From the sequence record NC_061444.1: 64,000 bases of DNA. One strand, 5' to 3'. Both the position numbers and the translations under genes were made by a program. The notes beneath the pieces were generated by a model. It was not told where the DNA came from. It made no database searches and worked only from the letters and a program-made list of their open reading frames with translations. The stretch's first letter is position 1. Each line of letters starts with the position of its first letter. Shown here piece after piece: positions 9,934 to 32,932 of this stretch.

Positions 9934-10476
9934 ATGACGGAAAAGATTACGCAGTTGGCAAAGTGGTTTGATGCGGCGAAAGTCGCATTCAAGATGGGGA
10001 CAGTTAATCCAGACGGTGATGCTGCGTTGCTTCTGGCAATTCACAAACGTCTGATTAAAGAAGTCGAAGATGCTGGTGATGCAGAAACCAAAGCATTCGC
10101 TCAGACAAATCTGTCAGAGTTCATTTCGGATCTGCGCATAGAGCTGCGCATGTTCGACCTGATCTGCAGGCGCTTCAACACTGACCTGTACCCTCAGATC
10201 AAAATCGGCGATGACGTCAAAATCTATATCGCGCTCATGGCTCAAACGCCGGGCAGTGCTGTAATGGCAATGACGTACCTGTATCTTGCTCGCTGCTACA
10301 CGCTGCAAGACATGATCTTAAACTTCCTCCCGAACGGCTTCCCGGCCTCAGATGCTCTCGGTCTTACGTGGAGCATTCAGAAAGGGAACAGTGATGCGTT
10401 CACCGGAAATCTGGTGGACGATATCGAAACTGTAAATAGCCTGTACAATAAGATGTATAGCTCAGGAGAGAAGTAA
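9934..10476 (+). CDS. hypothetical protein (180 aa)
   Basis: SD gagga, long ORF in operon. Confidence 0.65.
   Translation: MTEKITQLAKWFDAAKVAFKMGTVNPDGDAALLLAIHKRLIKEVEDAGDAETKAFAQTNLSEFISDLRIELRMFDLICRRFNTDLYPQIKIGDDVKIYIALMAQTPGSAVMAMTYLYLARCYTLQDMILNFLPNGFPASDALGLTWSIQKGNSDAFTGNLVDDIETVNSLYNKMYSSGEK
10429..10438 (+). promoter_or_regulatory. putative phage promoter, CTGTAAA class
   Basis: ACTGTAAATA 37 nt before the macrodomain ATG. Confidence 0.5.
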
Positions 10477-11063
10477 TGGATTTGTCTGCAATCGGTTACG
10501 CTTCGAAACAGTTCCGAGTAATCCCCGTTGAGAAGGGAAATCTCGTGACTGATTTTATTCAAGGTAAGTTCCGCGTTATCGGTGTTGAGTGCAATGCCCG
10601 TGGTGCTTACGGTAGTCCTATCCAGCAGAGTATCGCACGGCGCTTCCCGGAAGTCATGCGCAAAGTCGAATCAGTTGACTACGAGCATGAACTGACTATC
10701 GGTAAGACTCATCTTATTCGTGTTGGTACTCAACACCGCCGCAATCTGTTTGTTGCTAACATGCACATTGCTCGCGGTTTCGGTCTGGGCCTCAATCGCA
10801 CTATGTCCGAAGGCCCGATCAACCGTTTCAGTGAGCAGCACCTGACGCGAGCGTTTGAACATCTGATTGAACAGTGTGATAAAGAGAACATCGCACTCGA
10901 CCGTCAGATCGCTATTCAGCGCTTCTATGGTGGACTCGGCGGAGTTTCGTGGGAAGAAGTATGTGTAGTCCTTGATGCTATCTGTGAAAAGCACAAGTTC
11001 AACATGTACGCGTACCTACCACGTAACTACAATTCTAACTACGTGCGTGGTAGCGCGAACTAA
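10476..11063 (+). CDS. macrodomain (ADP-ribose binding/hydrolase-like) protein
   Basis: KGNLV...VECNARGAYGSPIQQSIARRFP and IAIQRFYGGLGGVSWEEV resemble T4 Tk.4/Poa1-type macrodomains. Confidence 0.7.
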   Translation: MDLSAIGYASKQFRVIPVEKGNLVTDFIQGKFRVIGVECNARGAYGSPIQQSIARRFPEVMRKVESVDYEHELTIGKTHLIRVGTQHRRNLFVANMHIARGFGLGLNRTMSEGPINRFSEQHLTRAFEHLIEQCDKENIALDRQIAIQRFYGGLGGVSWEEVCVVLDAICEKHKFNMYAYLPRNYNSNYVRGSAN

Positions 11064-11078
11064 CTCTGGGGTGTATTG

Positions 11079-11420
11079 ATGAATACAATACGCGGATTTG
11101 ATTGGCTCTTTTACGGAGATGGAACCGATAGCGGCCAACACTCAATTTTAAGTATCGTCGTTGAACAAGCGGCGAAATCAATACAGGTGGAAGTAGAACA
11201 AGGAAGTGCCGTGCCTGTAATTCAAGCGATTCAGGAAAACGAAGTCCTGTACGCGCAGACGGACGAAGGGCTTTATCGCGTTCGTTACAGTTGTTCGTTC
11301 CGTGGTCTTGACCCGAACTTCTTCCCGCAAGACAAAACGACATTCCGTTTGAAGCTCATCTCGTTTGAGTTTCTTCCGGGAGTTACTACGCACGATAAGC
11401 TGTTGGAGTACGTGCCATGA
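11079..11420 (+). CDS. hypothetical protein
   Basis: ORF in operon. Confidence 0.6.
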   Translation: MNTIRGFDWLFYGDGTDSGQHSILSIVVEQAAKSIQVEVEQGSAVPVIQAIQENEVLYAQTDEGLYRVRYSCSFRGLDPNFFPQDKTTFRLKLISFEFLPGVTTHDKLLEYVP

Positions 11421-12178
11421 TTACTGTGCAGAAAATTGAAGCCCGTTTAAAAAGACTGGACTATACTCGCCCCTCACCTAGTCGTGAGATGCTTGAGGGA
11501 CTTATGAAAGATGGACGCACTCGCATTCTTAGCAAATCAGCTTCGAGTGACCTGTGCAAAGACTCGATGGAATACTTCGAGTTCTGCCTTTCGCAAGTCG
11601 GCTCTTTCTGTACTGCGTCGTACAATGCTGTGGAGATTGGTCTGTCTCTCAACATTCAACCGATTTATATCGCTGCTGCTATTCACCTGTACGGTAGCGA
11701 TTGGCAGTTCCGTTTCCTTGAGCTTAAACGTTTCGGTCTGCTTGCTCGTGGTGATTACTCTGTGTGGAAGTCTGCTGACGCATGGTTCGGCCTGGGTGAA
11801 TGTCGTCGTCGCTTAGTACGTGCTGGTGTGACGAACGAAATCTCCAGCGGTCAGTCTGAGCTTCGCATGGCAGTACGCAAAGGTGAGCTGGACAAGATTC
11901 GTGAGATTGCCAAGAAGTTTCCGCATCGCATGATGTCCATTCTCGACGTGAAGCGTGACCCACTGTATAACGATCCTCGTATTGCGGCATCACGTAAAGC
12001 GCGTGAGAAAGCAAAGGCAGAAGCTGCTGCTGCCGGTAAGAAGCTGGCTGAACCTCGTTCGTACTCTGACCTGAGCGCTGTGTTCAACGGAGCAATCGCG
12101 CCTCGTAATACTGATCGTGGGTTTAGCGATTCGTCAGAAACTCGCGGTACGGTGAACGGTCGTCGTTTTCGTGTCTGA
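11417..12178 (+). CDS. hypothetical protein (253 aa)
   Basis: ATGA-coupled ORF, basic C-terminus. Confidence 0.65.
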   Translation: MITVQKIEARLKRLDYTRPSPSREMLEGLMKDGRTRILSKSASSDLCKDSMEYFEFCLSQVGSFCTASYNAVEIGLSLNIQPIYIAAAIHLYGSDWQFRFLELKRFGLLARGDYSVWKSADAWFGLGECRRRLVRAGVTNEISSGQSELRMAVRKGELDKIREIAKKFPHRMMSILDVKRDPLYNDPRIAASRKAREKAKAEAAAAGKKLAEPRSYSDLSAVFNGAIAPRNTDRGFSDSSETRGTVNGRRFRV

Positions 12179-12191
12179 TAACTGCGAACGG

Positions 12192-12198
12192 TAATTTC
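12192..12198 (+). promoter_or_regulatory. putative phage promoter, TAATTT class, ahead of the cmoA operon
   Basis: GTAATTTC in the 50-nt intergenic gap, 30 nt before the ATG, same spacing as other copies. Confidence 0.4.
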
Positions 12199-12228
12199 TG
12201 CTGTCAAAACAAATAACGGAAACCTCCA

Positions 12229-12999
12229 ATGAGCAACATTGATAATACAATGCCTGAGGGCAAGTGGGAGTTCAACGAGCCTGTTGCTGCTGTGTTTGAT
12301 AACATGCTGCAAAACTCAATCCCGTCGTATGGCCGTATGCGCGACTTGACCTATCGTCTGGGTCGTCAGTTCGTCACGCCCGGTACTGCTATCGTTGACC
12401 TCGGAGCTTCTCTGGGTCGTGCTATTGAGCCGTTCTGCAAAGAGTTCGGCGAGTACATCTACGTTCACGCTGCTGACCGTCCTGAGCCAGATCGTGAAAT
12501 CGGTAACATGTACTGCTGCTACGAAGTCGCTCCTGCGATGCTTGAACGCCTGCGTGAAAACGAAGTGCTGAAAGCGGCCAAAGCGAAAATCAGTAGCGAA
12601 TCGCTGGTGGACGTTGACACGTTCCGCTTCGACGAACAGGTTGAGTGCTCGCTCATTCTGTCTGTACTCACTCTCCAGTTCACGCCGATTGAACATCGTC
12701 AACACGTCCTTGAGAAAGTCTATGACTCTCTTGCAAAAGGCGGTGCGTTCATTCTCGTTGAGAAGGTTCTCGGTGACGACAACTTCCTCGACCGTCTGCT
12801 GGTGGACACGTACTATCACATGAAAGGCGACAACGGCTACACGCAAGAATCTATTGCATGTAAGCGTAAGTCACTCGAAGGTATTCTGGTGCCTGTCAAA
12901 GCTGCATGGAACGAAGAACTGCTGCGCAAAGCGGGCTTCAACCGTGTAGAATGTTTCTACCGCGATCTCAACTTCGCCGGATGGATCGCAATTAAGTAA
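12229..12999 (+). CDS. cmoA: CmoA-like carboxy-SAM synthase
   Basis: WEFNEPVAAVFDNMLQNSIPSY, VDLGASLG, TLQF, GGAFILVEK, KRKSLE and LNF align along the full length with bacterial CmoA; the KR Arg is kept. Confidence 0.88.
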   Translation: MSNIDNTMPEGKWEFNEPVAAVFDNMLQNSIPSYGRMRDLTYRLGRQFVTPGTAIVDLGASLGRAIEPFCKEFGEYIYVHAADRPEPDREIGNMYCCYEVAPAMLERLRENEVLKAAKAKISSESLVDVDTFRFDEQVECSLILSVLTLQFTPIEHRQHVLEKVYDSLAKGGAFILVEKVLGDDNFLDRLLVDTYYHMKGDNGYTQESIACKRKSLEGILVPVKAAWNEELLRKAGFNRVECFYRDLNFAGWIAIK

Positions 13000-13009
13000 G
13001 GGAAGTAGC

Positions 13010-14272
13010 ATGAAAGTAAACGGGCGTATCTTAGCAATCGTACCGCACAAGACTCTGGCTGATCGCACGAAGTCTGGTGTTGGTGCTTACATCGACGGAC
13101 TCGAAGCGTATGGCTTCTGCGACTTCATCACTGACGGTGAGAACAGTTCCGTAACCAAGAGCTTGTGGTTTAACTACGGTGACACCACGCTGAGTGATGG
13201 TTACAAAGTAGGGCACATTCAAAGTGAACTGCTTGCTGCTCTTGAGCGTCATCCGTATCGTGCAATCATTTGCAGCACATACGAAGCGATTGAAGCTGCT
13301 GTCGGTCTGGGCTTGCCAAAGATTATGCCCGTTTACTATCGTTCGCATAACAGCTTCCTGTTGACGCAAGATCTCAATGGTCTCGGTGCTGAGAAGATTC
13401 ACCGTGCTCTACTGCAAGCTGGCGTAACTGGTCTGCGTGTGTTAGCGAACTGTGATTCAACTGCAAACAATCTGGCATCACGTTATCCTGTTGCTGCGTC
13501 TGTCGCGTACAACTCGTTCAACGTGCCTGACTACAATCCACCAGCAAAGCGCAAGCCGACGCTGTTGATTATCTGTCGCTACGAAAAGGTTAAGCGCCCT
13601 GCGTTTGCTGCTCGTATCGCTGCTGCATCTGGTCTGCCTGTTCGTGTGATGACGGGCAGTGATCGCCAAGTTAAAAGCTGGCAGAAAGAATTGACCGATG
13701 CTGGTGTCAAAGACCATACAGTCGTTAGCGGTATCAGCGGCAAAGAGAAACTTGAGTTCATCGGTGCTTGTACCGTGGCTCTCTCCTGCGCTGAAATCGA
13801 ATCGTTCGCTAACGGTGTGCGTGAGTCTATCCCGTACTGCCCAACGTTCATCGTGCAAACATCGAAGTTCGACTGGGCGAAAGATTACACACGCTTCTGC
13901 TCTCTGGACAAACACATCCACGTTCGCACTGTTGACCGTGTGACAGAGCAGGAAGTCACTGAGCTGGGTAATGAGATTGCTTACTGGGCTACTACTCGCT
14001 ACCTGAACAATGCTCAACGTAAAGACTTGATGACCAAGTGGGTTGCTCAAGTCGATAAGGGCTGGGCTGACTTTATGAAGAATGCCGTTGTTGCTGATGA
14101 CGGCAAGCCCCTGAAAACTGACCTGTCGAAAGAACTCGAACAAAAAGGCGTAGTAGACTGGTCAGAAGTACCTGCGCTTATGCGTACTGTAAAAGCATTA
14201 CACAAATGCCATGCTCGTATGGGCCTGACATTCGATGGCACCAAAATCAAAACTAAAGGAAGAAAGAAATGA
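13010..14272 (+). CDS. GT-B fold glycosyltransferase (GT4-like)
   Basis: N-terminal SGVGAYI, ICRYEKVKRP, E-x7-E motif ESFANGVRE. Confidence 0.75.
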   Translation: MKVNGRILAIVPHKTLADRTKSGVGAYIDGLEAYGFCDFITDGENSSVTKSLWFNYGDTTLSDGYKVGHIQSELLAALERHPYRAIICSTYEAIEAAVGLGLPKIMPVYYRSHNSFLLTQDLNGLGAEKIHRALLQAGVTGLRVLANCDSTANNLASRYPVAASVAYNSFNVPDYNPPAKRKPTLLIICRYEKVKRPAFAARIAAASGLPVRVMTGSDRQVKSWQKELTDAGVKDHTVVSGISGKEKLEFIGACTVALSCAEIESFANGVRESIPYCPTFIVQTSKFDWAKDYTRFCSLDKHIHVRTVDRVTEQEVTELGNEIAYWATTRYLNNAQRKDLMTKWVAQVDKGWADFMKNAVVADDGKPLKTDLSKELEQKGVVDWSEVPALMRTVKALHKCHARMGLTFDGTKIKTKGRKK

Positions 14273-15303
14273 GCGTGATTGGTGATATCTATAACATTCC
14301 TCAACCGTATGCGATGTACTGCGGCAATGCCAAAACCAAAGCAATGGCAAAGATTACTGCCGGTATGGTTGAGTGGGCTCCTGAGAAGGTATGTTGTGTA
14401 GTCGAAGACGCTGAACGTTTGTTCGCTGACGTACCGTGTGTTGAAGTGCGCGATCTCGATAAGACCGACGCTGAAACTCTGGTTATCGGCTTTGCGCCAT
14501 TTGGCGGTCAGATTAACGACGACATTGATCGCGTTGTCTGCGAAGCATTAAAGCGCGGTCTGAACGTTGCTGCTGCTCTGCACGTCAAACTGGCAGACAA
14601 TCCTAAATACTTCGCGCTCGCTCGTGAGCACGGTGTATCACTGTATGACTTCCGCCATCACCCTGAGCAATATCCTCTGGGCACCGGTATTCGTCGTGAC
14701 GGTATTCGCGTTCTGACTGTTGGCACCGACTGCTCCTGCGGTAAGAAATTCACTGCGCTCGCTCTGACCAAGAAGCTGACCGAGATGAGTCAGAAAGCTG
14801 TGTTCTGTGCTACAGGCCAGACAGGCTTCTTGATTAGCGGTCGTGGCATCAACAACGACACTGTGGTTGCTGACTTCCTTGCTGGTGCTGCTGAGTGGCT
14901 TTCACCTGATGACAAAGACGCAATCTATTTGATTGAAGGTCAAGGCGCTATTCGTCACCCTGCGTATACTGGCGGCAGCATGAGTCTGATTGCTGGCTCG
15001 CAACCTGATGCGCTCGTTATGTGTCACACTGTTGGCCGTAACGTCATGATGGGCACTGAGCGCGAGATCAGTATCACGGACGAAATCTCTGCTAACCTTG
15101 CAGCGGCTGCGATGCACGACTGGTACCCTCGCGTTGTTGGTATCAGTATCAACTTCTGCGAGTCTGGTATGAACAAAGAACAGCGCAAGAAGTATCTGGC
15201 GACTATTGAGCGTAACATCGGCTACGTAGCGTTCGACCCGCAAGAAGGTGGCGAAGCATTTGACCGTGTTGCTACTACCATCGCGTTGCTGTCGCGCCCA
15301 TGA
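14269..15303 (+). CDS. DUF1611 family protein (DgcN-like)
   Basis: GFAPFGGQI, VLTVGTDCSCGKKFTA, ATGQTG, DFLAGAAE, IEGQGAIRHPAY, GSQPDALVMCH. Confidence 0.88.
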   Translation: MSVIGDIYNIPQPYAMYCGNAKTKAMAKITAGMVEWAPEKVCCVVEDAERLFADVPCVEVRDLDKTDAETLVIGFAPFGGQINDDIDRVVCEALKRGLNVAAALHVKLADNPKYFALAREHGVSLYDFRHHPEQYPLGTGIRRDGIRVLTVGTDCSCGKKFTALALTKKLTEMSQKAVFCATGQTGFLISGRGINNDTVVADFLAGAAEWLSPDDKDAIYLIEGQGAIRHPAYTGGSMSLIAGSQPDALVMCHTVGRNVMMGTEREISITDEISANLAAAAMHDWYPRVVGISINFCESGMNKEQRKKYLATIERNIGYVAFDPQEGGEAFDRVATTIALLSRP

Positions 15304-16235
15304 TAGTCCTAATCGACAACGCTGCGTTAGCGAGTAATGCAGCGTATTTAAAATCACTCGCACCGACCATGATTCCAGTTGTGAAAGGTAATTTCTATGG
15401 GCATGGTTTAGATTGCGTGGCAGCGTTCGCGTCTGACTTTGACGTGCTTGCAGTGCATAACGTCCGAGAGGCATTGACGCTGCGTGAGCTTGGACTTGAC
15501 CACACGCTGCTGATTCTCGGTGGTACTGACGCGCGTATGTGGAATATAGTTCCTGTATTGAATGCAGCGCAAGCCTCAACGTATGAAGGCCAGTATGCTG
15601 TGTTTGCTGATTGGGGCTGTCGTCGTATCAATGTCAGCCCTGGCCAACTTACCAGTCGCCCAGCTCTCGTTCTCATTCACTCTGAGGACTACCGTCAGCC
15701 TGTGTCTGCGCACACTGCTAACGAGATTGCTGTGCGTTACAACATGCCGCGCTCTCGATTGTCTGTAGGCTCAAGCATGAATGCGCTTACACCAGACGCG
15801 CCGAAGTTGATGCCGCGTGTTGGTATGGCACTTACCGGTTATAGCAGTGATGAAACTGTTAACGGTAATTTGATCGTAGCGAAGACAGTGCTTGCTCGCA
15901 TCTGCGATAAGCTGGATGCTGGTCGAGTATTTGGTTACGGTGCATTAGTGCCTAACAGCGCACACATGTTCCTGTATTCGATTGATGTGGGTTATTACGA
16001 TAACTTATATCAGTCAGAGAACAACACGCCTGTGCATTGCCCTACTGTGCCACACGCTAAGGTCACGTTGCTTACTGGCGTTGCGCGATCAATCAGCATG
16101 AACCATGCCTTCGTATTGTCAGATACTGAGCTACCGTTCGACTCTGAAATTGAATTGCTTGGACCGAACGTTCGCGCAGATTATCTGGCCAAACTTCACG
16201 GAACAACAACTGCGAATATTTTAAGGCTGGGTTAA
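15300..16235 (+). CDS. alr: alanine racemase-like PLP enzyme (fold type III)
   Basis: IPVVKGNFYGHG (PLP Lys), EALTLRELG, RVGMALTG, FGYG, VGYYD, ISMN; shorter than typical Alr. Confidence 0.8.
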   Translation: MIVLIDNAALASNAAYLKSLAPTMIPVVKGNFYGHGLDCVAAFASDFDVLAVHNVREALTLRELGLDHTLLILGGTDARMWNIVPVLNAAQASTYEGQYAVFADWGCRRINVSPGQLTSRPALVLIHSEDYRQPVSAHTANEIAVRYNMPRSRLSVGSSMNALTPDAPKLMPRVGMALTGYSSDETVNGNLIVAKTVLARICDKLDAGRVFGYGALVPNSAHMFLYSIDVGYYDNLYQSENNTPVHCPTVPHAKVTLLTGVARSISMNHAFVLSDTELPFDSEIELLGPNVRADYLAKLHGTTTANILRLG

Positions 16236-16237
16236 TC

Positions 16238-17107
16238 ATGGCTAAACACGTTTTGCGTAAGCTGTTTGAGCAGCACGTTAAGCAAGAGGTTAAAGCGGAC
16301 AAAGTTGCAGTGCTGCTGTCAAGCGGCCTTGATGGACTTGTCAGTGCTCTTGCTGCCCACGACTTAGGAAAGAAGGTACATGCCTTTACTTTCCAGATGG
16401 GTGACAACGAAAGTTTTGACAGCAAACACGCACGTAAAGTAGCAGAGAAGATGGGCTGGGAGTTCACGCTTGTGAAAGTTCCTACGTCCGACACTGCTAT
16501 CGCTCAGGGCTGGCGCACACTTCACGCCAAGTATCGCTGTATCAAAAAGCGTGACTACGAGTGTGCTTACCCTATGGTGTATTGCTACAAGGCAATCAAA
16601 GAAGCAGGTTACAAGTACGTTCTCAGCGGCCTTGTTGCTGACGCTTACTTCTGCTTTGCGCGTAATACCCACATCGCAAAAATCAGCGGCCCGCATAGCG
16701 TACTCGAAAAGTTCGACGAGTATCGCAAAGAGTATTGGGCGCCGTGGTTCAAGAACGGTAAGAAGTCTCTCGGCGTTGACGGCTATAATCCAAGTGGTAT
16801 GCTGCAACACGAAATGCTGTGCGACACTTTCGGCCTGACTCACGTTAACCCGTGGCTGTTGAAAAAAGTCCATGACTACTTCATCGGTCGTTCGTGGCAA
16901 GAACTAAATCAACCCAAGCAGAAAATGCCAATAACAGAAGCCTGGGCTGATCACATCGCTGTGGTAGGGCATCGTCCTCACCGTGGCTATCAAACAGAAG
17001 CTGGAGTACCTGCGTACTTCGAACGCTTACTGGATAATCCTGAGATCAACTTCAACGGTCGCAAGCGTGTTATGGACCTTGCGCGTGATTGGTCAACGAG
17101 GACTTAA
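16238..17107 (+). CDS. asparagine synthase C-terminal-domain-like ATP-dependent amide ligase (no glutaminase domain)
   Basis: PP-loop VLLSSGLDG, VLSGLVADAYF (cf. SGEGADELF), NPWL (cf. PFLD). Confidence 0.75.
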   Translation: MAKHVLRKLFEQHVKQEVKADKVAVLLSSGLDGLVSALAAHDLGKKVHAFTFQMGDNESFDSKHARKVAEKMGWEFTLVKVPTSDTAIAQGWRTLHAKYRCIKKRDYECAYPMVYCYKAIKEAGYKYVLSGLVADAYFCFARNTHIAKISGPHSVLEKFDEYRKEYWAPWFKNGKKSLGVDGYNPSGMLQHEMLCDTFGLTHVNPWLLKKVHDYFIGRSWQELNQPKQKMPITEAWADHIAVVGHRPHRGYQTEAGVPAYFERLLDNPEINFNGRKRVMDLARDWSTRT

Positions 17108-17108
17108 T

Positions 17109-17729
17109 ATGTTAGTACACATCATTGACGGAAGCGTAGGCGGTAACTATGTATTCCATAATCTGCAAGAGGCTGGTATCAACGCGCGTGTTCATGCTCC
17201 TAGTGATCCACGTCGCCGCGCAGTAGCAGCAACCTATCCTTCGCTGTCTATGGGATTTACTCCCGAAGAGATTGAGAAGCATATCGGTAATGTGCTTGGC
17301 ACGTATCGCGGTCTGTTCTTGATTAGCAGCTATGTTGGTTCGCTGGTGGCTCGCAGTATGATTGACCAGTGTGGTCAGAGTCATAACATCATCTACTGCG
17401 ATGATCTCAAGTGCGGGTCTACGCCTGTCGTTGCTTCCTCGATTTCTGTAAATGTCTATCAGAAGCAACGACAACTCGGACGCATTGCAGGTCGAATCAA
17501 ACACTTCGACTTCGACCATGAGTTCATTGTAGCTGACAAGGCTGTGCGTTTTGCAGCAGGGTCAGAATTTGATGAGCATGGTGCGCGTGAAGAACTGGAC
17601 GACACGCCCAAGTTCTTATCGAGTCCGTCAATGATTGTTGCTGCACACAAACTCGGTGTGAAGCGCAACGTGTATCACAACTACGCTGGTCTGGTGCAAG
17701 AGTTCCTTGAAAAGTGCCAGCAGCAATAA
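17109..17729 (+). CDS. hypothetical protein, degenerate Glu/Asp racemase (MurI)-like
   Basis: N-terminal IIDGSVGG resembles MurI VIDSGVGG; LISSYVGSLVA sits where IACNTASA would be; ATG 1 nt after the upstream stop. Confidence 0.45.
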   Translation: MLVHIIDGSVGGNYVFHNLQEAGINARVHAPSDPRRRAVAATYPSLSMGFTPEEIEKHIGNVLGTYRGLFLISSYVGSLVARSMIDQCGQSHNIIYCDDLKCGSTPVVASSISVNVYQKQRQLGRIAGRIKHFDFDHEFIVADKAVRFAAGSEFDEHGAREELDDTPKFLSSPSMIVAAHKLGVKRNVYHNYAGLVQEFLEKCQQQ

Positions 17730-17741
17730 CGCGAGGGTACG

Positions 17742-18005
17742 ATGATCAATCGCTTTCAGTTAAAACGAGTTCCAGTGATTGAAGCATGTCAGTGGAACGG
17801 AGAGAACGTTGAGGAGATGAATCAGTTTCTCAACGGAGGTGGTTACGTTGTAGGTCGTTATGTCCAGATTGGTGTGACGGACAAACAGGGTAACCCAACT
17901 CTGGCTAACGTAGCAGTAGGCAACTACGCAGTGAAAGACGAAGACGGCAAGTACGGCGCAATCACCGCATCAGAGTTGATGGACCTTTACGTACTGGCGG
18001 ATTGA
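17742..18005 (+). CDS. conserved phage hypothetical protein
   Basis: PVIEACQWNGEN motif typical of a small phage family. Confidence 0.65.
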   Translation: MINRFQLKRVPVIEACQWNGENVEEMNQFLNGGGYVVGRYVQIGVTDKQGNPTLANVAVGNYAVKDEDGKYGAITASELMDLYVLAD

Positions 18006-18012
18006 GGAACAC

Positions 18013-18468
18013 ATGAATCTTTTCTCTATTTTAAAACAGCAAGTGAAGAAAGCGCTGTCTACCGAAGCGAACCACGAACCAGAAATTCGCGCTTTGTTTG
18101 ACTGGCGTTACTCAGTTGAAATCAAAGGTCAGATGTATATCGTCGGCAAGACAGGAGCAAACACCTGCTTCTATATCGAGCCGGGAACGTCTGAACCTAT
18201 CGCCTGTTACCCCGATGCGTTACTGGACAAGATCGACCAGTGGGGTTCAGGCAAGTACGTGTCGTATGCGATCTACTTCAAACGCTTCGAAAGCCCTGTT
18301 GCTGAGAACATCAAAAGTCTCGAAAAGGTAATGACAGGTAAACCGAAGACGTTTAAGAAAGGTTACTTCATCTGTGGCGTTACGCCGAAAGGCAAGCGCG
18401 TCAAGCTCTATCGTCTTCAACAGGGACTGAGCGGAATGCAGTGGGTAGCAGTGGAACCTAAAAAGTAA
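18013..18468 (+). CDS. hypothetical protein (151 aa)
   Basis: SD gagga. Confidence 0.65.
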   Translation: MNLFSILKQQVKKALSTEANHEPEIRALFDWRYSVEIKGQMYIVGKTGANTCFYIEPGTSEPIACYPDALLDKIDQWGSGKYVSYAIYFKRFESPVAENIKSLEKVMTGKPKTFKKGYFICGVTPKGKRVKLYRLQQGLSGMQWVAVEPKK

Positions 18469-18496
18469 TCACGGACTGTCCGTGTGAGGAGCAAGT

Positions 18497-18790
18497 ATGA
18501 TTAGTGACATTACAGTCGGCTGTATCTATAAGTCACCTAGTGACAGACCATTTATTGTTGACTGCATTGCTGCGCACGGACAGGATTGCTCTCTACCTAT
18601 GGTCGTCTATCGTAATCTTGAAAAGACGTTAGACAAACCGGCAGGTACCGTATGGGTAATCCCTGAGTCGTTGTTCACAATGCAGTTCTCTGAGTATGAA
18701 TGTGGAGAACATCATGAACACAACGAACTTGTATCAGCATCTGGCGTCAAGGGGGTTCGATCCTTCTTTTTATCATTGCTGGGTGAGTGA
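18497..18790 (+). CDS. DUF1653-like SH3-fold protein
   Basis: GCIYKS...FIVDCIAAH...MVVYRNL...WVIPESLF pattern; 3' end overlaps the next gene by 77 nt. Confidence 0.6.
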   Translation: MISDITVGCIYKSPSDRPFIVDCIAAHGQDCSLPMVVYRNLEKTLDKPAGTVWVIPESLFTMQFSEYECGEHHEHNELVSASGVKGVRSFFLSLLGE

Positions 18791-19230
18791 AACACAAATG
18801 ACCGTACCTCTGTTTGCGTTTGACAGAGCGATGCGTGGTCTACAGGTCTACACACCAGATGCACCAAAGCACGACGCTAACCCGAAAGCGTGTCGTTACT
18901 TTACGCGAGCATTCGGCGGCAAGCAGTTGGTGTGGGGATCGGAAATTAAACCTGAACGGGTCGACCGTATTCTTAACTGAGTCTGTGTTCAAGGCATGTG
19001 CGCTGCATCGTCTTGGACTTAACGCTTGGTCCGTTCTTGGTTCTGATGTTAGTGACCATCTTTATCGTCAGTTGCGTCTTCTTGGTCTTCGGTTCGTTTG
19101 TCTCGGCGATAACGATCCGGCAGGGCAGAAGTTTAGTCAGACGTTTGGGCTAGGCGCTGTTAGTCGTGACCTTGATGAACTTACTGACGAGGAACTTCTC
19201 GACCTAACTCTACCATTCGTAAGGAAGTAA
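18714..19230 (+). pseudogene. Toprim primase-like gene split by a frameshift near 18945
   Basis: Frame 1 gives YQHLASRG...GLQVY...LVWGSE; frame 2 continues LNLNGSTVFLTESVFKA...LGS...GDNDPAG; removing one A joins them. Confidence 0.7.
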
Positions 19231-19231
19231 A

Positions 19232-19666
19232 ATGGAAAACAAACATAAGATCATCATTCGCATCCTAGGTGATGTGGGTAGCGGTAAGTCTGCTGCATAC
19301 TGTCGTATTGCTGCGATGCTGAAAGACAGCGGTGCGACTGTTGTTCATGCTGACGAGAAAGCGTGGAACATGTTGCAAAACGCAGGCGAAGCCGACCGCG
19401 CTAAGGAAGACCTATATACCTTCGCGCCTCAGGTTACTCTGGAGGAAGTCTGCATTCGCTCAGACTCGTCAATGTCGAAAAATCAGATCATGCAGTATTT
19501 CGCATACGCACATCTGCCTGCCCATCTGCAACGTGTCAGTAAGCCGTTCGCGCTGCTGGCGCAAGAGATGGATCTGTATCTGCCCGACGGCGCTGAGAAG
19601 TCTGCTGGTCTGCGTAAACTTCTCGAAGCGAAAGACTGTGCCGTCCGTGCGTTAGTTGCAAAATGA
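19232..19666 (+). CDS. hypothetical protein: P-loop-like N-terminus plus conserved helical-hairpin C-terminus
   Basis: GDVGSGKS; FAYAHLPAHLQ...EKSAGLRKLLEAKDCAVRA. Confidence 0.7.
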   Translation: MENKHKIIIRILGDVGSGKSAAYCRIAAMLKDSGATVVHADEKAWNMLQNAGEADRAKEDLYTFAPQVTLEEVCIRSDSSMSKNQIMQYFAYAHLPAHLQRVSKPFALLAQEMDLYLPDGAEKSAGLRKLLEAKDCAVRALVAK

Positions 19667-20437: not shown

Positions 20438-21280
20438 ATGACAGTAATCAGCCCCATTCGTTATCAGGGCAATAAGCGTAGCCTTATCCCTCTTATTCTT
20501 GAAAACACACCTGATGTGAAAGACTGCCCGCGTATGGTCGATGTGTTTGGCGGTAGTGCCACCGTGTGCGCGAACATGCCTCAGAAGTTTCGCGTCTACA
20601 ACGAGCTTAGTCCTCAGGTGTATGAGATCGTTAAGATGCTTGTCGAGCAAGACCCGAAGAAAACATTGGGTCAAGTCAAGCGTCTGGTAAAGCACTGGTG
20701 CCTGACAAACAGCAACGAAGCGAACTATGACGCGTTTCGAACTGTCGTCCAGAAGAAGCGTACTCCCATACTTCACTACGTTGCGCACAGACACGCACAC
20801 TCGAACATGCTGCGCTTTAACCAGCAGGGTGTGTACAACGTAGGCTTCGGCGATCGTGGTCTGATTGGAAAGTTCGAGGAGCTTGAGCATGAGCTTACGA
20901 CATTCCACCAGCACATGCAGGGTGTTCACCTAACGAACATGAAGTACGGTAAGTTGTTGGGTAGACTCAGCAATCAACTGGATTGCAATACGTTCTGCTA
21001 CTTCGACCCGCCGTATCTGGCAAGTGGCGCGATGCAGTACGGCAAGTGGACTGAATCTAACGAACGTAACCTGCTTGCTACGCTTGAACAACTCAATCGC
21101 TTAGGCGTACCGTGGATGTTGAGCAACGTTACAGAGCACAGGCATTTCTCGAACGACCTGTTAAAGCGTTGGCTAAAGAAACACGCGACGACCGTGCTCT
21201 ACCCGAACAAAAGCTATGCGATGAACAACGGCCAGAGTGGCTCGCATGGTACTGTTGAAATTCTGGCAATGAACTACTGA
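20438..21280 (+). CDS. dam: Dam-like (D12 class) DNA adenine methyltransferase
   Basis: SPIRYQGNK, DVFGGSATV, DPPY, WMLSN; target sequence not determinable. Confidence 0.88.
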   Translation: MTVISPIRYQGNKRSLIPLILENTPDVKDCPRMVDVFGGSATVCANMPQKFRVYNELSPQVYEIVKMLVEQDPKKTLGQVKRLVKHWCLTNSNEANYDAFRTVVQKKRTPILHYVAHRHAHSNMLRFNQQGVYNVGFGDRGLIGKFEELEHELTTFHQHMQGVHLTNMKYGKLLGRLSNQLDCNTFCYFDPPYLASGAMQYGKWTESNERNLLATLEQLNRLGVPWMLSNVTEHRHFSNDLLKRWLKKHATTVLYPNKSYAMNNGQSGSHGTVEILAMNY

Positions 21281-28807: not shown

Positions 28808-29145
28808 CTACACCAGTAATTCGCTTTGACGAACAGACACGTCAACTGCTGGCAAAGATCTTCGGCATACATAAGCCGTTCTTTGTTGTGCGTCGTGATA
28901 CGATCATCTCAGGTGGTGACTTGGGCTTTCGTGTGTATTTGTCGAATGGCACCAACACTGTTACCGTTCCTCGCGTTAAAGGCCTTGACTTGGGCGACAA
29001 GCTCTATCTCGGTGATGACGAGGAAGTTTATGAGTGGCATCCTCATATAGGCTGCACGTATATGGCCATTGGCGATAATCAGCCAGAAGCACTCGCATTT
29101 GGTCTTCATCCAATCGTTTTTCACAAAGACAGTCGGAACTCTTAA
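28804..29145 (+). CDS. hypothetical protein
   Basis: ATGA-coupled ORF. Confidence 0.6.
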   Translation: MTTPVIRFDEQTRQLLAKIFGIHKPFFVVRRDTIISGGDLGFRVYLSNGTNTVTVPRVKGLDLGDKLYLGDDEEVYEWHPHIGCTYMAIGDNQPEALAFGLHPIVFHKDSRNS

Positions 29146-30248
29146 TGGCAAAGCAAACTCTTGATCTACGCGATCCTAATCAGTACGAACTCTATTCCCT
29201 GCATTGTGTTGACGAGCAATACATCAATCTGGGCAACGCTATTATCTCTCAGGGTACTGATGAGTCAGACCCAGGCCGTACAGAAGATACGTGGCGCACC
29301 ATTATCGGCTGTGGCTTCCAGTTGTCAAACACGCTGATCGCTTTCCCTGCGTTAGTCAGTGCTCGTAAGAACTGGCTGGCAGCAGTCGATGAGATGTGCT
29401 GGATGTCTCGCGGCGAAACGAATATCAGCTCGCTCAATTCCAAAATCTGGAATGAGTGGGCAGATGAAGACGGCGAGTGCGGCCCTATCTACGGTCTGAT
29501 GTGGCGCATGTGGCCTGATATCAAAACGTTCCCGACTATTGAGTCGATGAAAGAGCGTCAGATCAGCGATGCAGAAATCGAGCGCATCTCGAAAGAGATC
29601 AATCGCATGAAAGCTGCCGGGTACACTGAAACGCAAATGGCTGACGGTCGTGTGTGCTACGAAGGTACAGTTGACCAGTTCGCTGATGCGCTGCGTCAGG
29701 TAATGGCCCGCAGTCGTTCTCGTCGTATTCGCGTTCAGGCGTACAACCCGTCCTATCTGCACATGCAGGGTCTGCCTCCGTGCCACACCGAGTTCGAGTT
29801 CAACGTAACCAAGCCGACGCTGTATGAAATCGCTCAGATGGAAGCGCGTCAAATGGCACCGGCCGAAGATTCGTTGCACATCGTTGTGACCATGAGATCG
29901 AACGATGTGCTCTTGGGCAGGCCATTTAACATCATCGGCTACAGCGCCATGCACCAGATGATTGCCAAGTGGGCTGGCTTGAACGTCGGCAGCTTTACGC
30001 TCAACACTACCAACACGCACCTGTACACGCATCACTTTGAAGCGTTTGAAAAGCAGCGTGAGCAGTGGGCAGTTCTCGCAGACAACATTAAGCGCACTGG
30101 CGAACCTGTTGTCTATCCTATGCTGGAAATCAGCGACGACATTCTCGGTCTGACGCCGGAAGAGTTGCTGGACAACGCGAACGCAGAGTGGTTCCAGCTT
30201 CTCGATTACGCACCATCACCAGCGGTCAAAGGACGTGTGACGAAATGA
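29145..30248 (+). CDS. thyA: thymidylate synthase
   Basis: IWNEWAD, GPIYG, SRR, LPPCH, MRSND, GRPFN, HLY. Confidence 0.95.
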   Translation: MAKQTLDLRDPNQYELYSLHCVDEQYINLGNAIISQGTDESDPGRTEDTWRTIIGCGFQLSNTLIAFPALVSARKNWLAAVDEMCWMSRGETNISSLNSKIWNEWADEDGECGPIYGLMWRMWPDIKTFPTIESMKERQISDAEIERISKEINRMKAAGYTETQMADGRVCYEGTVDQFADALRQVMARSRSRRIRVQAYNPSYLHMQGLPPCHTEFEFNVTKPTLYEIAQMEARQMAPAEDSLHIVVTMRSNDVLLGRPFNIIGYSAMHQMIAKWAGLNVGSFTLNTTNTHLYTHHFEAFEKQREQWAVLADNIKRTGEPVVYPMLEISDDILGLTPEELLDNANAEWFQLLDYAPSPAVKGRVTK

Positions 30249-30907
30249 TTGACAATAACTTCCTGCTGATTAAACGTATCAGCGCTTTCCTGTACCTTGG
30301 TTATGCAGAGAAAGAGCTGTACATCCCGCGCCGTGGCGTAGAAACGTTTGACGTGCTTATCCCTAATCCTAAAGGTCTGGCCGAAGAAGGTCCTATCCTG
30401 ACGATGCGAGCACGTTGCATCTATCATCTGCCGCACAACTGCTTCCTGATTCAACGTGTCGATGACGGTCGCTCTGGTTCGTATGAGCACCCATCATTGA
30501 TGAAGTCGCACTGCCAGAAAAACGAAGGCGTGTTCCAGAGATCAGAGCACGGTCGTGAGCAGTCTGCCGTTAACCTGATACTGAACGAACTGCGCGATGC
30601 AGAAACTGATCATCCTACGTGGCCGGAAGAATGTATTCACGCTGCATCCATCGTTGTTGAAGAAGCGGGTGAGTTGCTTCGTGACTGCGCTACGTTTGAA
30701 GAAAACGGCGATATGCGTCTGATTGAAAACATGGGGATTGAAGCTGTGCAGACAGGCGCAATGGCAGTTCGTTTCCTCAAGAATCTGCCGCGCAGCCAGA
30801 AGCGCACAATCCCACACAATGCCCTGCGTTCTATTCTCGATTCCGGGATGACACAGGAACAGCAACTGATTGAGTTGCGCCGCCTTGTAGAAAATGGAGT
30901 AAGCTAA
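30245..30907 (+). CDS. protein with C-terminal MazG-like NTP pyrophosphatase domain
   Basis: IVVEEAGELL...EAVQTGAMAVRFL. Confidence 0.6.
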   Translation: MIDNNFLLIKRISAFLYLGYAEKELYIPRRGVETFDVLIPNPKGLAEEGPILTMRARCIYHLPHNCFLIQRVDDGRSGSYEHPSLMKSHCQKNEGVFQRSEHGREQSAVNLILNELRDAETDHPTWPEECIHAASIVVEEAGELLRDCATFEENGDMRLIENMGIEAVQTGAMAVRFLKNLPRSQKRTIPHNALRSILDSGMTQEQQLIELRRLVENGVS

Positions 30908-31797
30908 TGAAGCTATTAGGCTATGCTGCTTGTGGCGGCACACCCTTTCGTATTCTGCGTGTGCAGGACTATGGTAGGCTGACTGGCGGTACGCACGAAC
31001 GTCTTGACCTGTTCGGTTGTATCTTCACTAACGTAGACGTGTCGCACGACATTGATACGAATCTGGCGTATCTGTCTTTACCCACAGCTAATGACTGGCG
31101 TGTTAATCTGACCAATCCAATGTTCACCAAAGAGTACATGGACTGGTTCAACGGTTACTCACCTACAATCGAAGTCATGCTTGACGCACACAAGCTGAAA
31201 GCACTCCTGCCTAACATCACGCAAGAGTTTGACCAGTTCGTTGACTGGCTGAAAGTGCAGATAGCGAAGATGCCGACGCTTGAAGTCTCGTTTAAGAACG
31301 ACACTCTTACGGCGGTTGCGACCGGTAATAAGTACGACATTTGGATGCTGTACAAACACTACCTGATGGTTGACGGCAATCTGATTGTGACACGCAATCC
31401 TGAAGGTGATGTTATCTTCCACGATGCTCACATCTCTGAAAAAGGTACCAAGCATTGGTTGCTTGAGCACAACAAAGAGATGATGCGCCTCGCAGCAGAA
31501 AATGATCTGCTAGCTGCATACATCACTTTCGGTGCGGTGCGCGGACACCCTCAGTATCAGTACACGTTTGTAACGCGTGAAGGTGACTACATGCACCGGC
31601 CAGTAGATGAAGCAGAGTTCACGCACATCGCTATTCGCGGGCAAATGCCTGTCGTGTTGTTTAAAGATGAGGGCGCTAACCTGAATCTTACTGTCAACAT
31701 CGATCAGCACTTCCCGCAGAAGTATCTCGACTTCACGCGTACTGCGCATCCAGTCATCGGCTACAACCATGCACTGAACCTGATTCGCTTCATCTGA
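30907..31797 (+). CDS. hypothetical protein (296 aa)
   Basis: Long coupled ORF. Confidence 0.7.
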   Translation: MKLLGYAACGGTPFRILRVQDYGRLTGGTHERLDLFGCIFTNVDVSHDIDTNLAYLSLPTANDWRVNLTNPMFTKEYMDWFNGYSPTIEVMLDAHKLKALLPNITQEFDQFVDWLKVQIAKMPTLEVSFKNDTLTAVATGNKYDIWMLYKHYLMVDGNLIVTRNPEGDVIFHDAHISEKGTKHWLLEHNKEMMRLAAENDLLAAYITFGAVRGHPQYQYTFVTREGDYMHRPVDEAEFTHIAIRGQMPVVLFKDEGANLNLTVNIDQHFPQKYLDFTRTAHPVIGYNHALNLIRFI

Positions 31798-32226: not shown

Positions 32227-32931
32227 ATGGCAAAAACTGCTACCAAAACAAAGGACGGAAAAAAGAAAGGCGAGTTGAAGTTTGATCTGAAAAAACTCAA
32301 TTCAGTCTCTCAGCTCAAGGGCGCAGAGTACAACCCGCGCTTCATTACTGACAGTCGCTTGAAAGCTCTCGAAGGTTCTCTCGGGAGTTTCGGTGATCTG
32401 TCTGGTATCGTGTTCAACAACAACATCAAGTCTGGTGTGTTGATCTCAGGCCACCAGCGTCTGAAATCAATCGACGGTTGGAAAACTCGCATCGAGATTC
32501 AGCCGACGACTGACAAGCACGGTACTATCGGTCTGGGCTACATTCATGCAACGCATCCGAAGAAAGCTGATCGTGTTATCAGCATTCCTCTGCGTGTCGT
32601 GAACTGGACTGATAAGAAAGCTGAGTACGCAGCGAACATCGCAGCGAACGCCCACGGCGGTGAGTTCGATAACAAGAAGCTCGCCAAGCTGGTTGAGAAA
32701 CTCGATCTGAATACGATCAAGCCTCAGCTGCTGGGTCTCGACCCGCTTGAGATTCGTGGTCTGCAAGCCAAGATCAAGATTCAGGCGAACGTCGAAGATA
32801 CGAAACGTGCTGGCAAGACTACTGGCCAGATGAACGGCAGCACCGGTAAGTTTAATGAGTACAACCCTGATGATGTGGGTGACACTCTGAACTGCACCTG
32901 CCCGCGTTGTGGATTTAAGTTCGAGGGATAA
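32227..32931 (+). CDS. ParB/Srx-like domain protein with C-terminal zinc ribbon
   Basis: YNPR, SLGSFG, LISGHQR, ANAHGGEFD, CTCPRCGFKF; start re-called. Confidence 0.8.
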   Translation: MAKTATKTKDGKKKGELKFDLKKLNSVSQLKGAEYNPRFITDSRLKALEGSLGSFGDLSGIVFNNNIKSGVLISGHQRLKSIDGWKTRIEIQPTTDKHGTIGLGYIHATHPKKADRVISIPLRVVNWTDKKAEYAANIAANAHGGEFDNKKLAKLVEKLDLNTIKPQLLGLDPLEIRGLQAKIKIQANVEDTKRAGKTTGQMNGSTGKFNEYNPDDVGDTLNCTCPRCGFKFEG

Positions 32932-32932
32932 T

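Follow-up and report, generated by a model that had tools for sequence, protein, structure and literature searches.

In the Synechococcus phage S-B43, CmoA makes carboxy-S-adenosylmethionine (carboxy-SAM or Cx-SAM), CmoX, a homologue of the C5 DNA methyltransferases (MTases) carrying Arg350, makes 5-carboxymethylcytosine (5cxmC) in DNA, and the asparagine-synthetase homologue CmoY ligates glycine in an ATP-dependent reaction to give 5-glycylcarboxymethylcytosine (Yang et al., Nat Commun 2025, PMC12783734). The biochemistry of all three enzymes, designated SpCmoA, SpCmoX and SpCmoY, was established on DNA, and an association of ParBc with CmoX was reported for many contigs, while DUF1611, racemase, glycosyltransferase, Erwinia and intein all go unmentioned in the main text (PMC12783734). 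No further papers on CmoX were found in the literature searched. Here we describe a predicted expansion of this pathway in Erwinia phage pEa_SNUABM_32 (NC_061444.1), an Alexandravirus jumbo phage of Erwinia amylovora with a genome of 265,891 bp, of which positions 1-64000 form the analysed stretch of 64,000 nucleotides (hereafter the window); the 5.5 kb studied most closely match this genome at 100% identity. The original prediction, made from the letters of this window, had read a block of six genes (12229-17729, gp016 to gp021) as a candidate DNA hypermodification operon extending the CmoA/CmoX/CmoY scheme; its account of the cyanophage system was correct, and the assignment of the block to this pathway is well supported by gene context. 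The DNA of pEa_SNUABM_32 probably bears a cytosine decoration more elaborate than that of S-B43, one that is described in no paper in the literature searched.

As in S-B43, all three core enzymes have homologues in pEa_SNUABM_32, a ParB-like gene stands beside CmoX and no CmoB homologue was found. In contrast to S-B43, the core genes stand in two separate blocks (12229-17729 and 32227-35062) with about 15 kb between them, CmoX carries an intein, the ligase belongs to a separate clade, and the cluster additionally encodes a DgcN-like DUF1611 protein, a pyridoxal-phosphate (PLP) racemase and a GT4 glycosyltransferase. A more distant likeness exists to the hydroxymethyl-pyrimidine systems, including glucosyl-5-hydroxymethylcytosine of T4, arabinosyl-5-hydroxycytosine of RB69 and HY126, and the aminoacyl and aminoalkyl thymidines, in which a handle at C5 of a pyrimidine is likewise followed by modular decoration with swappable enzymes, GT-B glycosyltransferases among them, and in which cassettes vary between close relatives. 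In pEa_SNUABM_32, however, the handle would be a post-replicative carboxylate derived from carboxy-SAM instead of a hydroxyl or hydroxymethyl group, and decoration would begin with the ATP-dependent formation of an amide. We know of no described system that combines a racemase with a DgcN-like acyltransferase.

The block consists of six genuine and tightly packed open reading frames (ORFs), all on the + strand, and the coordinates and junctions originally given for it were confirmed: from gp016 to gp021, neighbouring genes are separated or joined by a 10-nt gap, two successive ATGA overlaps, a 2-nt gap and a 1-nt gap. The start of gp021 was placed, in agreement with RefSeq, at the ATG at 17109 and not at the upstream GTG at 16983. 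RefSeq names one product of the block a 'tRNA methyltransferase' and the other five hypothetical proteins.

Carboxy-SAM synthesis, cytosine carboxymethylation and ATP-dependent amidation are each supported by homology to characterised enzymes. For gp016 (12229-12999), membership among CmoA sequences was judged with the curated models TIGR00740 or NF011995, and the match to TIGR00740 (2.9e-41, 141.7 bits) lies below the curated cutoff of 193.3 bits. The protein matches phrog_4752 at 8.7e-80, its top solved structure is E. coli CmoA (4GEK, 1.5e-29, aligned over the full length), and it shares 31% identity with the biochemically active SpCmoA, so that homology supports its prediction as a CmoA-like Cx-SAM synthase.

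The partner gene that the original prediction had pointed to at 32933-35062 (gp051, + strand) matches PF00145 at 5.8e-38 and is, as predicted from separate searches with its two exteins, a DNA cytosine C5-carboxymethyltransferase of the CmoX type. The C-extein has SpCmoX (8YF3) as its top match in the PDB, with an E-value of 5.3e-31 compared to 1e-10 for M.HaeIII, and HMMER alignment to 8YF3 placed the arginine of ERLGRICVP in gp051 on R350 of ERVGRMVPP in SpCmoX, the residue that contacts the carboxymethyl group and is replaced by asparagine in ordinary C5 MTases (PMC12783734). Both features by which CmoX enzymes were defined (PMC12783734), namely a C5-MTase fold with an SPPC motif and an R350-equivalent arginine, were found in gp051, although splicing is needed to make the SPPC motif whole. 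The original prediction had missed that the gene is interrupted by an intein of 357 residues (33221-34291, + strand), which splits the GSPPC motif exactly at the catalytic cysteine of motif IV: GSPP is followed by the intein, ending in VVHN, and then by C-KGFSTAG. Its features include Cys97 as Cys1, the C-terminal VVHN453 and Cys454 as the +1 residue, and it matches Intein_splicing at 4e-09 (36.9 bits, cutoff 35.8) as well as Hint_2. Among metagenomic homologues with near-identical exteins, the intein site is occupied in locus L010 (7783-10014, 743 residues) and empty in locus L012 (1712-2737, 341 residues). After splicing, the +1 cysteine would serve as the methyltransferase nucleophile.

Directly upstream of gp051 lies gp050 (32227-32931, + strand), a ParB-like protein matching phrog_620 at 3.1e-32. 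In L010, L012 and L026 a homologue of this gene immediately precedes CmoX; in L017 and L020 it stands further off, at about 1.7 kb upstream. An annotated ParB-like gene also directly precedes the C5 methylase in the Pseudomonas phage PaBG.

The amide ligase foreseen in the block was identified as gp020 (16238-17107), which matches the Pfam family Asn_synthase at 6.9e-16, contains an SSGLDG PP-loop and shares 34% identity with SpCmoY (7e-53). Its nearest relatives beyond those in related jumbo phages are cyanophage ligases of the S-B43 type, and it fits the CmoY family by the PP-loop ATP pyrophosphatase fold of the asparagine-synthetase C-domain, by its homology to SpCmoY and by its position, which adjoins CmoA and CmoX in several lineages. 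Phylogenetic analysis revealed that the nine ligases linked to DUF1611 form one clade, which we refer to as type D, with a support of 100 in the Shimodaira-Hasegawa-like approximate likelihood ratio test (SH-aLRT), while the ligase of L026 clusters with that of Rivsvirus outside this clade. Compared with SpCmoY, type-D ligases carry an insertion of about 13 residues and an invariant GHRPHRGYQTEA in place of AVKDHINLQLGS. Because of the separate clade, the insertion and the different invariant motif, the amine used by gp020 probably differs from glycine. Searches of 185,579 species genomes with a few peptide patterns, which were not exhaustive, returned no cellular relatives of the type-D ligase or of gp019.

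Among the additional genes, gp018 (14269-15303) encodes a DUF1611 protein of two domains, the P-loop domain DUF1611_C (PF07755, 5.5e-51) and the Rossmann-like domain DUF1611_N (PF17396, 2.1e-17), both above their cutoffs. The family includes DgcN, which NCBIfam names an N-acetyltransferase (NF041892). A D-glutamate catabolic pathway formed by DgcN and DgcA in marine bacteria and haloarchaea, together with the DgcN structure 7XRJ, was reportedly described by Yu et al. in ISME J in 2023. The phage protein shares the two-domain architecture of DgcN, aligns with 7XRJ at 4.8e-62 and is paired with a racemase as in cells. However, it scores 306.9 bits on the DgcN model, below the equivalog cutoff of 480 bits, which a 322-residue fragment of 7XRJ used as a control exceeded with 540.8 bits. 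In a maximum-likelihood tree, ten DUF1611 proteins linked to Cmo genes formed a single clade (SH-aLRT 99), separated by a long stem from 75 cellular sequences including DgcN 7XRJ. The genomic setting differs as well: in all six cellular DUF1611 loci sampled, a gene of the MR_MLE family (enolase superfamily, DgcA type) lies immediately downstream, whereas the phage copies are followed by an Alr-like gene or by the ligase, so that the partner of gp018 is a PLP enzyme of the alanine-racemase fold instead of DgcA, and its neighbours are genes for DNA modification and not for catabolism. Thus, by these criteria gp018 is best described as a DUF1611 protein of a phage-specific, Cmo-linked clade that is related to the N-acetyltransferase DgcN while falling outside DgcN proper. 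The two clades share 63 positions conserved at 90% or more, including the GTDxxCGKK P-loop, and only four positions are strictly specific to the phage clade, which argues for unchanged chemistry. Within Alexandravirus, comparison of the window with loci L002 and L004 gave identities of 57-59% for DUF1611, compared to 81-91% for CmoA and 82-85% for the ligase; a divergence above that of the neighbouring genes suggests faster evolution or exchange of this single gene.

The gene between DUF1611 and the ligase, gp019 (15300-16235), encodes a compact PLP enzyme of the alanine-racemase fold and is a probable amino-acid racemase. It matches Ala_racemase_N at 8e-15 (55.6 bits, cutoff 24.1), while the C-terminal domain, with 18.2 bits, stays below its cutoff of 25. 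A profile search yielded 45 matches in the PDB, all of them amino-acid racemases (for Ala, Ser, Lys, His or of broad specificity) apart from one chain named 'Engineered protein', and the best, 4QHR (1.3e-13), aligned over the full length. The invariant residues K29 (in VVKGNFYGHG), R173 (PRVGMALTGY), Y213 (FGYG) and M267-N268 coincide with conserved motifs of alanine racemases in the alignment to 4QHR, and we take K29, Y213 and R173 to be the PLP lysine, the catalytic tyrosine and the arginine contacting the pyridine nitrogen, respectively. With 53.9 bits against a cutoff of 168, gp019 falls outside the TIGR00492 alr equivalog, and solved Alr enzymes exceed it in length by about 50-80 residues. 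Its homologues comprise only six clusters, and the three more distant ones, whose contigs were read, also lie between DUF1611 and the ligase.

For gp017 (13010-14272) no match was obtained in Pfam (including PF00534), NCBIfam or PHROG, and only its homologue P0006, which is 40% identical, gave a weak match to PF00534. An AlphaFold2 model built on seven homologues reached a predicted local distance difference test (pLDDT) value of 77.6 and a predicted template modelling (pTM) score of 0.75, and Foldseek comparison with the PDB returned BshA, GlgM, the glycosyltransferase of phage HY126 and MshA as top matches (3.5e-10 to 1e-8; TM-scores to the top targets 0.55-0.62). At E ≤ 1e-3 there were 197 matches, of which the best 50 were nearly all GT-B enzymes. 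Comparison with BFVD gave viral family-1 glycosyltransferases, with a cyanophage 'DNA alpha-GT' among the structural matches. The EX7E motif (E264-x7-E272) is invariant across the seven homologues, and on the strength of motif and model we predict that gp017 is a GT4-like glycosyltransferase of the GT-B fold. HY126, whose glycosyltransferase resembles gp017 structurally, has DNA with arabinosylated 5-hydroxycytosine. The homologues of gp017 form only seven clusters, and the four with examined surroundings (the window, the pEa_SNUABM_13 group, P0006 and P0007) are all from phages; in P0006, P0007 and the window, the DUF1611 gene adjoins GT4.

A further lead comes from mycothiol and bacillithiol biosynthesis, in which a GT4 enzyme (MshA or BshA), an ATP-dependent ligase (MshC or BshC) and the acetyl-CoA-dependent N-acetyltransferase MshD build a glyco-aminoacyl conjugate. 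The same enzyme classes are found in the phage cluster, and gp017 has BshA and MshA among its top matches by structure; the substrate here would, in contrast, be borne on DNA, and the likeness holds at the level of the fold for GT4 and of enzyme class for the remainder.

The last gene of the block, gp021 (17109-17729), had been labelled MurI-like in the original prediction, as a possible second racemase. While the labels CmoA-like, GT4, DUF1611, Alr-like and AsnB-C-like held for the other five genes, no evidence was found for this one, and the reading as a MurI-like (PF01177) racemase was rejected. The 12 members of the gp021 family gave no Pfam match at E ≤ 5 and none in NCBIfam or PHROG, and no PDB match was obtained by sequence (E ≤ 1) or profile (E ≤ 10); many MurI structures are present in the PDB. 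An AlphaFold2 model from 11 sequences was unusable (pLDDT 42.6), and an exhaustive profile search of 1.84 billion representative proteins returned only five clusters, all close kin, marking gp021 as an orphan family. The gene lies directly or shortly downstream of the ligase in the window, AD1, Alexandra, Rivsvirus, Y3 (with a 2-oxoglutarate (2OG) oxygenase gene in between) and fHe-Yen9-02 (with an ORF of 190 residues in between), and its positions in other matching records are consistent with this place. It is absent from the pEa_SNUABM_14 group, L007, L011 and L017. Its membership in the pathway is uncertain. A gene for a 203-residue protein that occupies the same position in PaBG was considered as a counterpart and showed no detectable homology (hhalign probability 6%).

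The neighbourhood search that the original prediction had suggested for the six-gene set revealed that the cluster genes, with the exception of gp021 in the loci just named, recur together with Cmo genes in independent phage lineages, in varying order and at 36-78% protein identity, an arrangement that is more than chance. In at least five other phage lineages, DUF1611 lies between CmoX and CmoY or CmoA, with different gene orders and 42-59% identity. The order is ParB-CmoX-GT4-DUF1611-CmoY-CmoA in L010, L011 and L012, where the intein site of CmoX is either occupied or empty, CmoX-DUF1611-Alr-CmoY-CmoA in L017 and L020, and ParB-CmoX-DUF1611-CmoY-CmoA in L026; L007 and L009 show CmoA, an ORF of 84 residues, GT4, DUF1611, Alr, CmoY and a synthase for 3-deoxy-D-arabino-heptulosonate 7-phosphate (DAHP), and L018, L028 and L029 hold partial versions of the cluster. 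Closer to the window, with its order CmoA-GT4-DUF1611-Alr-CmoY-gp021, stand AD1 and Alexandra (CmoA-DUF1611-CmoY-gp021), pEa_SNUABM_14 (CmoA-GT4-DUF1611-CmoY), Rivsvirus (CmoA-ligase-gp021-like) and Y3 (CmoA-ligase-2OG-Fe(II) oxygenase-gp021-like). All four combinations of presence and absence of GT4 and racemase were thus seen, while every phage cluster with DUF1611 also has the ligase, CmoA and CmoX, provided that the contig is long enough. Homologous clusters in genomes lacking a C5 MTase with the motif-X arginine, which had been named at the outset as evidence that would count against the scheme, were checked for, and the homologous clusters were found to adjoin Arg-motif C5 methyltransferases directly; GSPPC and the motif-X arginine were read in the neighbouring CmoX genes of L010, L012 and L026. 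Across the phage collection, the ligase and a CmoX-type gene occur in matching numbers of records (48 Erwinia, 2 Dickeya, 2 Pseudomonas and 1 Yersinia).

The accessory genes seem to be specific to this variant. Of the 71 canonical SpCmoY-type loci examined in IMG/VR, 53 contain CmoX and 46 contain CmoA, but not one carries DUF1611, GT4, Alr or gp021, and this absence fits a variant-specific pathway function better than general host takeover. Conversely, among the best 80 metagenomic DUF1611 loci, two have Cmo genes and the other 78, without them, are cellular and DgcN-like. For the racemase and GT4 clusters, all members with examined surroundings come from phage clusters of the type described here.

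Several side observations concern the cassette itself. In the place of gp021, L007 (14162-15025) and L009 (4509-5372) encode a DAHP synthase (PF00793, 2.4e-42, KPRT motif), which would plausibly boost the shikimate pathway and hence the supply of prephenate for CmoA, and in Y3 the same slot holds a 2OG-Fe(II) oxygenase (L189 3771-4409, PF13640, 1.6e-15). This slot looks like a hot spot for swapping accessory modification enzymes among related jumbo phages. In PaBG, the genes for ParB, CmoX, CmoA, a protein of 150 residues, the ligase and the 203-residue protein form one block (L191 1230-5807). The ORFs of 84 residues in L007 and pEa_SNUABM_14 showed no similarity to each other.

Based on these data, we propose the following pathway. 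The gp016 enzyme would convert SAM and prephenate to carboxy-SAM, from which gp051, once its intein is spliced out, would transfer the carboxymethyl group to C5 of cytosine in the phage DNA, giving 5cxmC. The ligase gp020 would then adenylate the carboxylate of 5cxmC and join an amine to it as an amide. This amine would be an amino acid other than glycine, handled in its D-form, for which gp019 would racemise the L-form and thereby raise the pool of the D-amino acid. Such D-amino-acid chemistry is indicated by the family link to the D-specific DgcN together with the translational coupling of the racemase gene between the DUF1611 gene and the ligase. From acyl-CoA, most simply acetyl-CoA, gp018 may N-acylate the amine at the D-centre, acting either on the free amino acid before its ligation through a second amine or on an amine left over after ligation, and gp017 may glycosylate the appended group with a nucleotide-sugar as donor. 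The product would be a bulky acylated and glycosylated aminoacyl-carboxymethylcytosine that shields the phage DNA from host nucleases. In its general form, an acylated, glycosylated 5cxmC amide containing a D-amino acid and made by an expanded CmoA/CmoX/CmoY pathway, we lean slightly towards this model; its final chemistry, that is the D-amino acid, the acyl group and the sugar, is what we infer from enzyme families and context, and any specific structure of the base deserves much lower confidence. The fully specified proposal, an undescribed hypermodification of cytosine in virion DNA in which a racemase-made D-amino acid is amide-linked to 5cxmC, N-acylated by the DgcN-family protein and glycosylated by GT4, is offered as a tentative possibility.

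A number of points weigh against this proposal. The ligation of a simple D-amino acid through its alpha-amine would leave no amine to acylate, so a diamino acid or another acceptor is needed; the DgcN-like acyltransferase role, which the original prediction had not foreseen, fits poorly with ligation through the alpha-amine only, and the model needs one of four ways round this problem, namely a diamino acid, acylation before ligation combined with ligation of a side-chain amine, another acceptor, or a changed activity of the DUF1611 protein. The sub-cutoff score and long branch of gp018 imply that its donor and acceptor may both differ from those of DgcN, and DUF1611 also occurs beside a second ligase type with a glycine-ligase-like motif (L026). 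Some close relatives lack GT4 and some lack the racemase, which means that the core reaction requires neither. With the intein sitting exactly at its catalytic cysteine, gp051 can work only after protein splicing, on which CmoX activity must depend. Co-transcription, and with it the term operon, is suggested by gene spacing; a scan of 11000-19500 for consensus promoters and terminators gave a result no better than that with shuffled sequence. Finally, literature searches returned no experimental study of how DNA is modified in Alexandravirus, Y3, Yoloswag or PaBG.

A first alternative is that only the three core enzymes act on DNA. In this case, the phage would carry 5cxmC or a simple amide of 5cxmC with an amino acid as in S-B43, and DUF1611, racemase and GT4 would act on other targets, such as the D-Ala and D-Glu pools of the host, interfering with its cell wall, or a glycosylated protein or envelope component of host or phage, being clustered only through co-regulation. 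This would agree with the action of cellular DgcN on free D-amino acids, with the fact that GT4 enzymes mostly work on small molecules, lipids and proteins, with the optional nature of GT4 and racemase in close relatives, and with the fact that we found no neat chemical task for an N-acetyltransferase once the alpha-amine is ligated. However, it leaves unaccounted for why DUF1611 is embedded between CmoX and CmoY or CmoA in those five or more lineages despite varied gene orders and 42-59% identity, why it forms a dedicated Cmo-linked clade, and why no member of the racemase and GT4 families turned up outside these clusters, with two genome-wide scans returning no cellular relatives of racemase or ligase; the absence of DUF1611, GT4 and racemase from the 71 canonical loci points the same way, and we consider this explanation unlikely. 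A variant that keeps gp018 on the DNA dispenses with acetylation: using ATP or another acyl donor, the protein would attach a second residue, such as D-Ala made by the racemase, to the ligated amino acid at its free carboxylate, leading to a short peptide-like side chain on cytosine that GT4 may glycosylate. It requires no diamino acid, is compatible with both ligase types, and draws on the C-terminal P-loop domain with its conserved GTDxxCGKK and on the long stem between the Cmo-linked clade and DgcN. The 63 positions shared with the acetyl-CoA-using DgcN and the mere four clade-specific substitutions argue against such a change of chemistry, and we know of no DUF1611 member that acts as a ligase, which renders this variant quite improbable.

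Two further explanations detach single genes from the proposed pathway. GT4 could belong to a separate pyrimidine pathway and glycosylate a hydroxymethylated base made via gp046 (29145-30248), a member of the thymidylate-synthase family with about 100 extra residues. Phage DNA glycosyltransferases classically act on hydroxymethyl pyrimidines, and the cyanophage 'DNA alpha-GT' is among the structural matches of gp017. Yet in L010-L012 the GT4 homologue separates CmoX from DUF1611, in L007 and L029 it is a neighbour of DUF1611, the pEa_SNUABM_14 group has one as well, and every homologue with examined surroundings is in a Cmo cluster; moreover, gp046 keeps the PFNI asparagine typical of enzymes acting on deoxyuridine monophosphate (dUMP) and passes the cutoff of the thymidylate synthase model TIGR03284, and a Pfam sweep of 43 further ORFs in the window revealed no kinase or hydroxymethylase partners, nor any sugar-nucleotide or chorismate/prephenate genes. 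We therefore regard a separate role of GT4 as very unlikely. Least probable, to the point of being nearly negligible, is that CmoA serves the modification of transfer RNA to 5-carboxymethoxyuridine (cmo5U) and that the cluster is unrelated to DNA, as the 'tRNA methyltransferase' annotations in RefSeq and PHROG and the partnership of E. coli CmoA with CmoB on tRNA might suggest. A tblastn search of 50,697 phage records with E. coli CmoB (E ≤ 1e-3) found no homologue in any Alexandravirus record, its sole match being one Salmonella record of 3.4 kb, and on this ground a tRNA role of CmoA was rejected. The presence of a CmoX-type C5 DNA methyltransferase with the carboxylate-binding arginine, which adjoins the cluster in other phages, and the phage homologue SpCmoA, which feeds DNA modification (PMC12783734), likewise speak against it.

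Further genes of the window were noted alongside these results. The thymidylate-synthase family protein gp046 comprises 367 residues with PPCH and PFNI (dUMP-type Asn) motifs. Upstream of the ParB-CmoX pair by 0.4 kb, gp048 (30907-31797, 296 residues) gave only a weak match to the MnmC2 tRNA methyltransferase domain (E 0.001). A D12-class N6-adenine DNA methyltransferase (PF02086, 3.9e-23) is encoded by gp028 (20438-21280), at a position conserved in AD1, Alexandra, Y3 and the Yersinia phage, so that the phage probably has adenine methylation too. Just upstream of the cluster, gp013 (10476-11063) showed a weak macro-domain match and a match to a PHROG 'phosphatase' (4.3e-27); the gene holds this place in all relatives, and its counterparts in AD1 and Y3 are annotated as O-acetyl-ADP-ribose deacetylase. 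The Pfam sweep, which covered the 43 unannotated ORFs on the + strand between 1744 and 47081, otherwise returned only single members of DUF4326, HD_4, ASCH and RelB-antitoxin, and gene orientation in the window flips from + to - at about 47.1 kb.

The first description of the carboxymethylcytosine handle dates from as recently as December 2025, and glycine is the one adduct proven to date. If the fully specified proposal is true, the base would, to our knowledge, be the first natural modification of a nucleic acid to include a D-amino acid and would give the DUF1611/DgcN family its first role in nucleic acids. The expanded pathway would also provide a first functional context for the Cmo-linked DUF1611 clade and for two orphan-like families. 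As the accessory genes are modular, with GT4 and racemase each present or absent, close relatives should carry simpler bases, and sister phages would thus hold a graded series of simpler forms. Cultured Erwinia and Dickeya phages that differ only in accessory genes represent a natural deletion series, which makes the chemistry of the pathway directly testable by comparative liquid chromatography-mass spectrometry. The set of enzymes for programmable DNA derivatisation could grow accordingly, and the modification bears on the evasion of restriction by phages used in the biocontrol of fire blight.

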